NCBI GenBank assembly: GCA_039096225.1
Contig: JBBPEB010000015.1
Coordinates: 2,046,001 to 2,110,000, forward strand
Reading direction: 5' to 3'
Length of the DNA stretch: 64,000 nt
From: Blastocystis sp. Blastoise
Lineage: Eukaryota; Protista; Bigyra: Opalinata
Of the stretch, positions 60,274-63,200 are shown in pieces (the stretch's first letter is position 1; each line of letters starts with the position of its first letter). Under the pieces are notes generated by a model. The model searched no databases, had not been told where the DNA came from, and was given only the letters and a program-made list of their open reading frames with translations. Made by a program: the position numbers and the translations under genes.

Positions 60274-63200
60274 TTATCGAGCTGCAGTAGCTAATTTATG
60301 AGCCATTTCTAAGATACCAGGCCACATAGCATTCAAATTAGTATCTAAAATTCCCAAGAAAATACGTTCTGCATCTTCATCATTCAAATTCAAATTAAAT
60401 TTATCTTGAACTTTACTAATAGAAGCTTCATTAATAGCATCCATTCCTCCATCTTCCATTAAACGTAATAAATTAATAATCAAATTAGCACTCTTTCGTA
60501 ATATATTATATGCCTGACAACAATAATTAATAAATTTACCAAAATTTTCAGATTTAGGACCACCAAAACCCTATAGAATATGTATAATATATTACTATTA
60601 TTATTATTTTCTGAATTATTATTATTATTATTATTATTATTTAGAATTCTTTTTATGTGCTTATTATATATTGACTATTATATTATATACTTCGACCATT
60701 TCGGGTGTAAGACGTACAGCTGGTGGATTCCATTTGGGATCACGACCCAGTATAAAACCGAAATCTATATGGAAAAATTCACCTGTTTTCTATATATTAA
60801 TAATAATAAGTAAAATAATAATAAATATAACAATAATAATAATAATAAATATAACAATAATAATAATAAATAAATATAATAATAAATATAATAATAAATA
60901 TAATAATAAATATAATAATAAATATAATAATAAATATAATAGATGATATATACCTTGACCATAATATTATCAAGATGTCTATCACCAATTCCAAGTAAAT
61001 AAGTAATAACACAGTAACCAGCAAAAGATTTAACATAACGATTCATAGCCTATATATAAATTCATATTGGTTAACAAATAATATAATATAATATATATAT
61101 AATATATACATCTTCAGAAATATTATATTCTGCTTTTTCACTATAATTACTTTCTTTTAAGAATTCCTAAAGAAAATAAATGAATAATATATTATAATAA
61201 TAAATATAATAATATATAATACATAATACATACTTGAACATTCTTAATTTTTGATATACCTGTAGCTCCATTAACAATTTCTAATAAACCTTCATCATGG
61301 CTATATATTATATAGAATATATATATTATATAGAATATATATATTATATAGAATATATATATACTTCATAGGTAATACTCTATATATAGAGAGATTCATA
61401 TCTAAACTCATTTTCTTTAATAATTTATCCATTAAACGAATCATTTGAAGAACTAATTGATCTTGAGTAATATCATCTCCCAATTTAAACATAATTTTAA
61501 TTGTTTTGGTTGTACGAGCTTCACATTTCTGAGTATTAGTACAATAATATTCGATATCAATAGAAGATGAACAACAAGCTGTGCAAATAGCATAATTACA
61601 CAAACGACAGTGATGACGCTCATGCTATATATATATATATAGAATTAAAAAGACATTTAGATATAAAAAAAAAATAAATCAGTATATAAATCGAAAAAAT
61701 AATAATTAGATAATAATAAATAAATATACATATATATAAATATATATACACCTGGTTCTGTGAATGCAGCACCACAATTCGCACAATTCTTGCACGTGCA
61801 CATCATGTGAATCTTATTACATTCTTTATTGGCGCAAACGGGTATCAATTCTTTCACACTCTTTTCAGATCTATATATATATATATATATATATAATTCA
61901 TAATATTTATATATATATATATACTTTTTATTTTTACTATTTAAAGTAAATTCTAATAAGAAAGGAGCACGAGCACTTTTAAATACCTAAAATAAATAAA
62001 ATAATAATAATAATATATTAAAAAATAATAAATTCAAATACAATAATATTTAATAATAATAATATTATTATTATTAATATTATTATTAATATTAATATAT
62101 ATATATATATATATATACTCTACAGGCATCTTGGTTAATACCAACAACTTCTAGTTCAGGTCGAAGAGGAAGCGGAAGAGGATTCTCCGTCGATAAATTA
62201 AGATCAGAACTTTCTAGGGTAGGAATAGAAATAATAAGAATATATATAAGAATAATAAGATCAAATCAATAAATAAGAATGAGTATAAATAGTAACAATA
62301 GATATTAATACCTTTTGAAATAATTTCTTTAAGTTTATCAAGTTTCTTATTTGCTCTACCACCATCCTCGTTAATACGACGACCATAAGACATAATCTAT
62401 ATATATACTATGTTATATGAATAGGATATATAATATTATATATATTATGTTATATAAGTAGGATATACAATATTATATATAATATGTTATATAAGTAGGA
62501 TATACAATATTATATATAATATGTTATATGAATAGGATATACAATATTATATATAATATGTTATATGAATAGGATATATAATATTATATATAATATGTTA
62601 TATGAATAGGATATACAATATTACATATGTATATATACCTTAGTAAGGAATTCAATTTGTCTACTAGTAGTTTCATAGAGAGTACGACCTATAGCTGTTG
62701 TTGACATCATATCACGATATTTAGAGAAAACAAAGGAATAAGCATCTATATATATATATATATATATATATATATATATATAGATGTATATATATATATA
62801 TATACCTTGATAAATAGATTCTTGATTTGCACAAGCATATAAATACCAATATAACCAGTTACCAATAGATAATGTATCGGAATCTACAGCACGCTTAATG
62901 AGGAAATTTGCAAGTGGACTCTCTAATTGTTCACTATCAACAGTTCCATTTTTGAATTGTTTCTCCCATTTAATAGCGTTTACTAATTGTAACATATATA
63001 GATCTAAATCTTCATCACTTACACTATATATATATAATAATAATAATAATAATATATATATATATCAATAGAATATCAAATAATATATATAAATATATAT
63101 ATACTCTTGTAAGATATTAACAGCATATTGACGTATATATTCATTTTCAAAGTCTTTTGATAATAATATAAGAGCATCTTCGACGTCGATTCGTTCCCAT

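Follow-up and report, generated by a model that had tools for sequence, protein, structure and literature searches.

Architecture of the VPS34 gene

The window analysed here, a stretch of 64,000 nucleotides (nt) from Blastocystis sp. Blastoise (contig JBBPEB010000015.1, positions 2,046,001 to 2,110,000 of the forward strand), carries at its end, on the minus strand, the gene of VPS34, a phosphatidylinositol 3-kinase (PI 3-kinase) of class III. Six-frame translation revealed that about 83 extra residues separate the P-loop strand of this enzyme from its catalytic-lysine strand IMFKLGDD, and these residues, which very likely include a zinc finger of the FYVE type, are the subject of the present analysis. 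Searching an 87-residue exon of the gene against 1.8 billion representatives returned a deposited protein of 991 residues (NCBI source, hereafter P0001) with 100% identity over the exon, the splice junctions of which are identical to those deduced from the exons. Its exon-by-exon matches cover C4:2106277-2111349, and the 5′ exons, which encode the C2 domain, run past base 64000 of the window to about G000:C4:2111349. The exons were searched one at a time, and P0001, which equals the spliced model, was used thereafter. The genome searched comprises 33,340,088 bases in 34 contigs.

Pfam analysis of P0001 assigned a PI3K_C2 domain (residues 35-128, 54 bits), a PI3Ka domain (residues 370-560, 142 bits) and a PI3_PI4_kinase domain (171 bits), with nothing else above the cut-off and thus no Ras-binding or adaptor-binding domain. 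The protein possesses the catalytic motifs expected of a VPS34 (P-loop FKSA..P, catalytic lysine in FKxGDDLRQD, catalytic loop GDRHxDN, and DFG), the last in the form HIDFGFILG; in an alignment of 33 sequences, the K, G, D and D of the lysine strand and the DRH are invariant or nearly so. Named plant, fungal and animal VPS34/PIK3C3 proteins are 45-50% identical to it over the kinase region. In the 33.3-Mb genome this is the sole gene that matches P0001 over its whole length, whereas the other loci of the phosphoinositide 3-kinase and 4-kinase (PI3K/PI4K) family match the catalytic core only. The host gene of the insert, which is full-length, is therefore the genome's only VPS34. Further PI3K/PI4K catalytic domains include G000:C14:1012959-1014430, C5:601498-603055, C22:1239381-1240281 and C16:746525-747305; the C14 and C5 domains seem to be related to each other as a pair, and no extra locus has a match to the VPS34 helical or C2 domain or to the finger.

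The insert is encoded by two exons, Z1 and part of Z2, which follow the exon of the P-loop strand (exon A; Table 1). Exon Z1 completes the codon of K660 and encodes a linker (S661-V671), a four-cysteine (C4) knuckle (C672/C677/C684/C686), the first FYVE cysteine pair (C689/C692) and a turret-like loop, GAAFTEPG. Exon Z2, which passes through CTNTQKC before it reaches the lysine strand, contains the RHHCR codons at 61604-61618 and the K747 codon at 61484-61486, the K, G, D and D columns of the latter strand being invariant in the alignments. The Cys/His module as a whole spans C672-C734 (window 61523-61836), preceded by a disordered linker of residues 653-671. The VPS34 region is about 23% GC and is interrupted by many short, (TA)n-rich GT-AG introns. 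One intron at window 62410-62630 consists mostly of tandem copies of a unit of ~37 nt, tatgttatatgaataggatatacaatattatatataa-like, and other VPS34 introns begin with GTATATAT and are (TA)n-rich.

Table 1. Parts of the VPS34 gene around the insert, in window coordinates.
Feature	Position	Strand	Basis
VPS34 gene, part within the window	60277..64000	-	Six-frame translation; Pfam domains of P0001; exon-by-exon P0001 matches
Exon A, P-loop strand and kβ4, ends in phase 2	61925..61986	-	Splice contexts; strand at 648-654 in the HELCAT model
Insert exon Z1	61750..61870	-	Equals P0001 residues 660-700; Cys columns conserved in the alignment
125-nt GT-AG intron (GTATAT...TATAG) that splits the zinc finger immediately upstream of HERHHCR	61625..61749	-	Splice contexts
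Exon Z2, whole	61365..61624	-	Finger half and catalytic-Lys strand in one exon
Finger half of Z2: HERHHCRLC, C714/C717, C728/C734, then a short helix into kβ5	61505..61624	-	Pfam FYVE; secondary structure in the model of the insert alone
Remainder of Z2: kβ5 with the catalytic lysine (IMFK747LGDD) and the next helix	61365..61504	-	PI3_PI4_kinase profile positions 2-47

If the Cys-rich segments were intronic or skipped, the insert would be an artefact of annotation or splicing, and a VPS34 of the canonical kind would result. We consider this highly improbable on several grounds. Exon A (62 nt) and exon Z1 (121 nt) together measure 183 nt and keep the frame, whereas joining exon A directly to Z2 breaks it; and half of the finger shares exon Z2 with the catalytic lysine. 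Both points favour the insert as part of the mature protein. The deposited gene model includes it, and relatives carry it either in a single open reading frame (ORF; contig L003) or on an intronless, transcript-like contig (L002). Moreover, the gene models of the Blastocystis genome paper required introns supported by RNA-seq (PMC12129017). Sequencing runs share words with the gene (0.44 for run X1 and 0.26 for a poly(A) gut metatranscriptome), which is suggestive and no proof of splicing. The evidence that the insert is present in the mature mRNA is thus indirect, drawn from frame logic, the deposited gene model and the transcript-like contig of the relative.

Insertion site in the kinase N-lobe

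In 230 proteins, the P-loop motif and the catalytic lysine lie a median of 17 residues apart, compared to 99 residues in P0001. In a predicted structure, termed HELCAT (mean predicted local distance difference test score, pLDDT, of 86.7), the insert is flanked by two strands at residues 648-654 and 741-748, which places it at the distal turn of the kβ4-kβ5 hairpin in the N-lobe. Many unrelated VPS34 proteins have insertions of 46-135 residues at the same turn, which are Cys-free, of low complexity and rich in Ala, Ser and acidic residues. Such Cys-free loops, equivalent to window 61505-61924, were seen for example in P0220, P0238, P0274, P0243 and P0266. Judged from these alignments, the kβ4-kβ5 turn is a recurrent insertion hotspot of VPS34 across eukaryotes, and it is only in the Blastocystis clade that it holds a folded module. 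In both HELCAT and a model of the insert alone, the last helix of the finger enters the lysine strand within three residues, and because of this short connection a mechanical coupling of the finger to the ATP site is plausible.

The insert resembles FYVE domains in sequence and predicted fold

Comparison of nine lineages that carry the insert revealed a common pattern. It starts with C-x2-4-C-x6-C-x-C-x2-C-x1-2-C and a loop of 4-38 residues, and continues with (R/K)HHCRxC-x4-C-x2-C, 8-12 residues, C-x5-C, 9-11 residues and the lysine strand M(F/V)KxGDD. The module thus has 12 cysteines and two histidines, and the 12 cysteines are invariant over the nine lineages; they would suffice for three zinc ions, which is the stoichiometry we infer. 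HMMER aligned the fifth and sixth cysteines with the first cysteine pair of the EEA1 FYVE domain, and the first four cysteines therefore form an extra knuckle at the position of the WxxD motif. In this alignment, the four FYVE pairs correspond to C689/C692, C706/C709, C714/C717 and C728/C734, the fourth of which is Cx5C and not CxxC.

The Pfam FYVE profile (PF01363) matched residues 640-745 of P0001 with 25.8 bits and an E-value of 1.2e-5; the score was 20.2 bits on the whole protein and 22 bits on the exon Z2 piece alone. A profile built from the insert family, searched against the PDB sequences, found the EEA1 FYVE domain as best match (E 6e-4), followed by LM5-1, Lst2, Vps27, RUFY1 and ALFY, and an HHalign comparison with six canonical FYVE domains encoded in this genome gave a probability of 96.3% and an E-value of 1.7e-9 over 37 columns. 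The FYVE_2 profile matched weakly on the relative P0002. A degenerate DNA pattern for HHCRxC-(31-41 aa)-KxGDDxxQDQ...LMD matches the window at a single place, and none of 100 shuffled versions contains it.

The AlphaFold2 model of residues 655-755, predicted from an alignment of 12 rows, has a mean pLDDT of 77, with 85-92 in the core. It consists of strands at the RHHC motif and at residues 712-714, 718-720 and 726-728, followed by a helix at residues 731-738. Structural similarity search of this model against the PDB using Foldseek retrieved FYVE or FYVE-related domains in 17 of the top 20 matches, with probabilities of 0.54-0.99 (at least 0.9 in 12 of them) and modest E-values of 0.02-0.4. 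With VIA-align, Z-scores of 4.2-4.9 were obtained for RUFY1, EEA1, endofin, Vps27 and Hrs, the alignments covering 51-58 residues. Low absolute Z-scores are to be expected of a domain of 60 residues, and the telling point is that a single family prevails among the matches. For the model of the ESM Atlas itself, nine of the ten nearest clusters were FYVE or FYVE_2; the feature search of the ESM Atlas returned no usable match. Altogether, it is very likely that the insert consists of a disordered linker, a C4 knuckle and a FYVE-type cross-brace, and that it is a real insertion conserved in its clade.

A preliminary description of this DNA, made from the letters alone, had placed a FYVE-like finger within the VPS34 kinase domain, split between two exons by the intron at 61625-61749. 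The exon structure, the junctions of the deposited protein, the Pfam and HHalign scores and the predicted fold all agree with it, as does the short spacing in the 230 proteins with its statement that canonical VPS34 has only a short loop at the site. The expected FYVE fold is found by Foldseek, VIA-align and the ESM Atlas alike. The finger is also as atypical as was described, with ERHHCR as its central motif, no WxxD, YYC in place of RVC and an additional N-terminal cysteine cluster. As for the proposed HMMER comparison with the FYVE family, the match at E 1.2e-5 upholds the assignment, whereas the 25.8 bits lie under the gathering cut-off of 27.8.

Distribution, origin and selection

The degenerate DNA pattern located the insert on nine human-gut-type metagenome contigs of 53-62% GC, several of which are labelled human gut metagenome; none was taken for human DNA, and the contigs so labelled encode a protist VPS34 with introns of roughly 30 nt. 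Among the proteins that bear the insert, P0002 (from SRR23967707) has 1007 residues, and its whole coding sequence, with the insert in frame, lies on the intronless 3183-nt contig L002 (42% GC), which has ends resembling untranslated regions. P0005 and P0155 are encoded on AT-rich genomic contigs with the whole insert in a single ORF, and P0004 comes from a metagenome (44% GC). P0003 is encoded on the JGI metagenome contig L005 (JGI 3300040751, 65% GC), where it adjoins a dynein-attachment-factor gene. As this neighbour encodes Dynein_attach_N and RPAP3_C domains, the source of L005 is probably a flagellate, which suggests a relative outside Blastocystis. Two peculiarities were noted among these sequences. 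L005:1-170 has a strongly basic extra loop of 38 residues between the first FYVE cysteine pair and RHHCR, at the turret position, and P0155 has an Asp at the tenth conserved cysteine (residues ~440-450, LCDDDF for LCDTCF), which would be a loss of a zinc ligand or an assembly error.

The arrangement HHCRxC...KxGDD was present in only 10 of 349 collected proteins, mostly VPS34s from across the eukaryotes, and these 10 represent five lineages. A homologue search with the insert region of P0001 returned only P0001 itself. In a tree calculated solely from that part of the kinase which follows the insert, all five insert-bearers fall to the same side of a branch with a Shimodaira-Hasegawa-like approximate likelihood ratio test (SH-aLRT) support of 86, and one change on this tree explains the presence of the insert. 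The insert is confined to one clade and presumably arose once. The human-gut lineages share with this genome an intron directly before (R/K)HHCR, at alignment positions no more than two residues apart. At least one human-gut-type contig has an intron of exactly 30 nt before KHHCR and the others have a short one there, of about 30 nt in L007-L009; the relative L003 has no intron at this site, its insert being one uninterrupted ORF. Introns of the tortoise Blastocystis isolates are longer than the 30-nt introns of the human subtypes (PMC12129017).

All 12 cysteines and the (R/K)HHCR motif are kept in nine lineages, the GC contents of which range from 24% to 65%. For the intron-containing L007-L009, the two halves of the insert were aligned as separate rows, and codons were pooled only to calculate the ratio of nonsynonymous to synonymous substitution rates (dN/dS). 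Between two human-gut-type lineages, dN/dS was 0.31 over 63 insert codons, compared to 0.27 in the adjacent kinase strand, and the 11-codon linker before the finger showed no constraint; as the samples are small, these figures are indicative only. With this reservation, a dN/dS of about 0.3 is indicative of purifying selection on the insert.

These data bear on whether the finger is simply a tolerated passenger fold in a permissive surface loop, contributing nothing to VPS34 function. That the same loop accommodates the Cys-free, low-complexity stretches of many unrelated VPS34s marks the site as permissive, and the Asp for the tenth cysteine in P0155 also points this way. A passenger would nevertheless hardly be expected to evolve like the adjacent catalytic strand while the linker in front of it changes freely, or to retain all its cysteines and the H, H and R of its motif in genomes of such different composition. 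Nor was a loss of the insert seen within the clade, among the contigs found by the pattern and the members of the tree. We therefore regard a mere passenger as improbable.

The preliminary description had proposed a survey of stramenopile VPS34s for the insert, and the answer is divided. Within the Blastocystis clade the insert occurs widely, the other eukaryotic VPS34s among the collected proteins are without it, and its novelty stands in the searchable literature, where no description of a Blastocystis VPS34 with a FYVE insert or of a FYVE insertion in a VPS34 kinase domain was found. The Blastocystis genome paper does not mention Vps34, FYVE or phosphatidylinositol (PMC12129017). As far as the searchable literature shows, a FYVE-type reader within the catalytic lobe of VPS34 is undescribed.

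The finger at the lipid-binding positions of FYVE domains

FYVE domains that bind phosphatidylinositol 3-phosphate (PI3P) are characterized by the motifs WxxD, R(R/K)HHCR and R(V/I)C (PMC3017826). Contacts to the head group come from the RHHxR residues and the Arg of RVC. In R(R/K)HHCR, the first Arg binds the 1-phosphate, and its loss lowers the affinity; the Asp of WxxD, together with the second His, keeps out other phosphoinositides (PMC3017826).

In the insert, (R/K)HHCR is invariant in all nine lineages. An R or K occupies the RVC position in six of the nine, L007 and L009 having retained RVC and four lineages having K-x-C; two lineages have W-x-C. The net charge of the insert ranges from +2 to +17 across the lineages, and the loop before (R/K)HHCR, which corresponds to the turret, is hydrophobic in most of them (LL, VVI, MVMI, VL); across the family, both features and the basic residue at the RVC position are consistent with membrane binding. 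The His and Arg side chains of the HHCR motif are not zinc ligands in classic FYVE domains.

A number of observations weigh against reading the finger as a FYVE-type membrane anchor. At the level of the family profile, the Pfam score remains under the gathering cut-off, and the relatives score 15.8 or 13.7 bits or not at all. At the level of the motifs, the residue that opens the central motif is E, D, N or L in eight lineages and basic in only one, P0001 having ERHHCR where FYVE domains have RRHHCR. None of the nine lineages has a W..D before the first FYVE cysteine pair, the place being taken by Cx2-4Cx6CxC, whereas the canonical FYVE domains of the same genome do have it; and at the R(V/I)C position P0001 has YYC, with Arg replaced by Tyr. 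P0001 is indeed the weakest case of all, with a net charge of only +3 and a single Phe in its turret loop. The fingers of rabphilin, Slp4 and CARP2, which are without the classic motifs, are among the best structural matches, and several FYVE-related fingers such as these do not bind PI3P. The two histidines could be metal ligands in a module with three zinc ions instead of lipid ligands. Finally, the HELCAT model does not fix the orientation of the finger towards the active site and the membrane face (pLDDT 37-54). Given that WxxD, the first Arg and the Arg of RVC are all absent, classic PI3P binding by the P0001 finger is doubtful.

Proposed role of the insert

The preliminary description had suggested a built-in product sensor or membrane anchor that gives feedback, which, with the classic PI3P-binding signature incomplete in P0001, stays a tentative reading. 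We propose that a zinc-finger module was gained, at the tip of the VPS34 kβ4-kβ5 hairpin, by an ancestor that Blastocystis shares with a few relatives. This finger would act in cis as a membrane-binding element that grips the head group of an acidic phosphoinositide, PI3P, the kinase's own product, being the obvious candidate. It would thereby keep the catalytic lobe on PI3P-bearing membranes and provide product-dependent retention or feed-forward. A cis anchor for membranes or phosphoinositides ranks as the most likely role of the finger, above a module for protein interaction, and is put forward tentatively, its chances being a little under even; for the structural statement and the lipid-anchor mechanism taken together, the balance is about even. 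Lipid binding, the identity of the lipid and the effect on catalysis are what we infer on the way to this role.

The finger may alternatively be a FYVE-related module for protein interaction or allostery, which would dock a Rab GTPase or a subunit of the VPS34 complex, or pack on the N-lobe to tune the hairpin of the P-loop and the lysine, its attachment to which would be rigid. We hold this to be somewhat unlikely. The top structural matches do include Slp4, rabphilin-3A, melanophilin, RIM and CARP2, and the lack of WxxD and of a conserved first Arg and RVC Arg would fit such a function. The extra C4 knuckle offers a surface that classic FYVE domains lack, and the short helical link to kβ5 suggests mechanical coupling. 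By contrast, (R/K)HHCR is invariant across a deep divergence, and its side chains are the lipid ligands in classic FYVE domains; a hydrophobic turret loop and a positive net charge are seen in most lineages; and no partner was identified. Regarding the complex subunits, a BARA exon of Beclin/Atg6 is present in the genome. Profiles of ATG14 (PF10186; ATG14/UVRAG family) and of the VPS15 helical domain (PF22956) gave no exon-level match there, an observation that lends weak support to an interaction module, as the exon-by-exon search is insensitive and absence is not claimed.

A bolder extension of the membrane anchor, which we regard as unlikely and offer as speculation, would make the VPS34 of Blastocystis and its relatives a self-reading kinase. 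Being fixed to the strand of the catalytic lysine, the embedded finger would turn the binding of product, or of another acidic lipid, into membrane retention and allosteric activation, yielding a positive-feedback switch. If this were true, self-reading might partly replace the targeting subunits (those of the ATG14/UVRAG type and perhaps VPS15), and the finger would provide a handle, specific to the parasite, on an enzyme essential to the commonest eukaryote of the human gut.

Of the sources of PI3P, VPS34 is universal and the one best studied in structural terms, and the FYVE domain is the archetype of a PI3P reader. Should the finger bind lipid, the enzyme would offer a natural experiment on how a PI 3-kinase engages membranes and is subject to product feedback; should it not, the finger would be a new case of a FYVE-type fold used as a regulatory insert beside an ATP site. 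Either way, the insert marks the Blastocystis clade, human-gut lineages included, by a feature absent from the host enzyme, and it also presents the kβ4-kβ5 hairpin as a general insertion hotspot of VPS34.

Neighbouring gene

On the opposite strand, a neighbouring gene occupies window 58246-59934 (+). Its first ORF of 346 residues has no Pfam match, and an exon after it matches the C-terminal portion of a TLDc domain (PF07534) with 26.4 bits.

Comparison with known systems

Compared to the canonical VPS34/PIK3C3 of yeast, human, Drosophila and plants, the Blastocystis protein has the same order of C2, helical and kinase domains, and the P-loop, catalytic lysine, DRH and DFG are found in both. 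They differ in the segment between kβ4 and kβ5, which comprises ~5-15 residues in the canonical enzymes and ~88 residues, with a folded zinc module, in the Blastocystis protein.

The classic FYVE domains (EEA1, Hrs, Vps27 and endofin; PF01363) are the best matches of the insert in both sequence and structure. They share with it the spacing of eight cysteines, CxxC-x(8-11)-(R/K)HHCRxC-x4-CxxC-...-C, the HHCR signature and a fold of two hairpins followed by a C-terminal helix. However, the insert has a C4 knuckle instead of WxxD, the first residue of its central motif is usually acidic, and its last pair is Cx5C; moreover, classic FYVE domains stand free, whereas the insert is embedded inside another domain. 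The FYVE-related fingers of rabphilin-3A, Slp4, melanophilin and RIM (FYVE_2) and of CARP2/RNF34 adopt the same fold, are also without WxxD and reach comparable structural scores. These fingers, the Rab-binding ones included, are not known to conserve HHCR; they have Rab-binding helices or RING domains on their flanks, and none of them lies inside a kinase, unlike the insert.

Fusions of a lipid enzyme to a lipid reader are known from PIKfyve/Fab1 with its N-terminal FYVE domain, the class II PI3Ks with their C-terminal PX domain and MTMR3/4 with their FYVE domain. These proteins follow the same logic, in which a phosphoinositide-metabolizing enzyme is joined to a reader of 3-phosphoinositides. 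Their readers are terminal domains that fold separately and read the substrate or a neighbouring lipid, whereas the finger of Blastocystis VPS34 is inserted into the N-lobe of the catalytic domain, adjacent to the lysine that binds ATP, and belongs to the very enzyme that makes PI3P.

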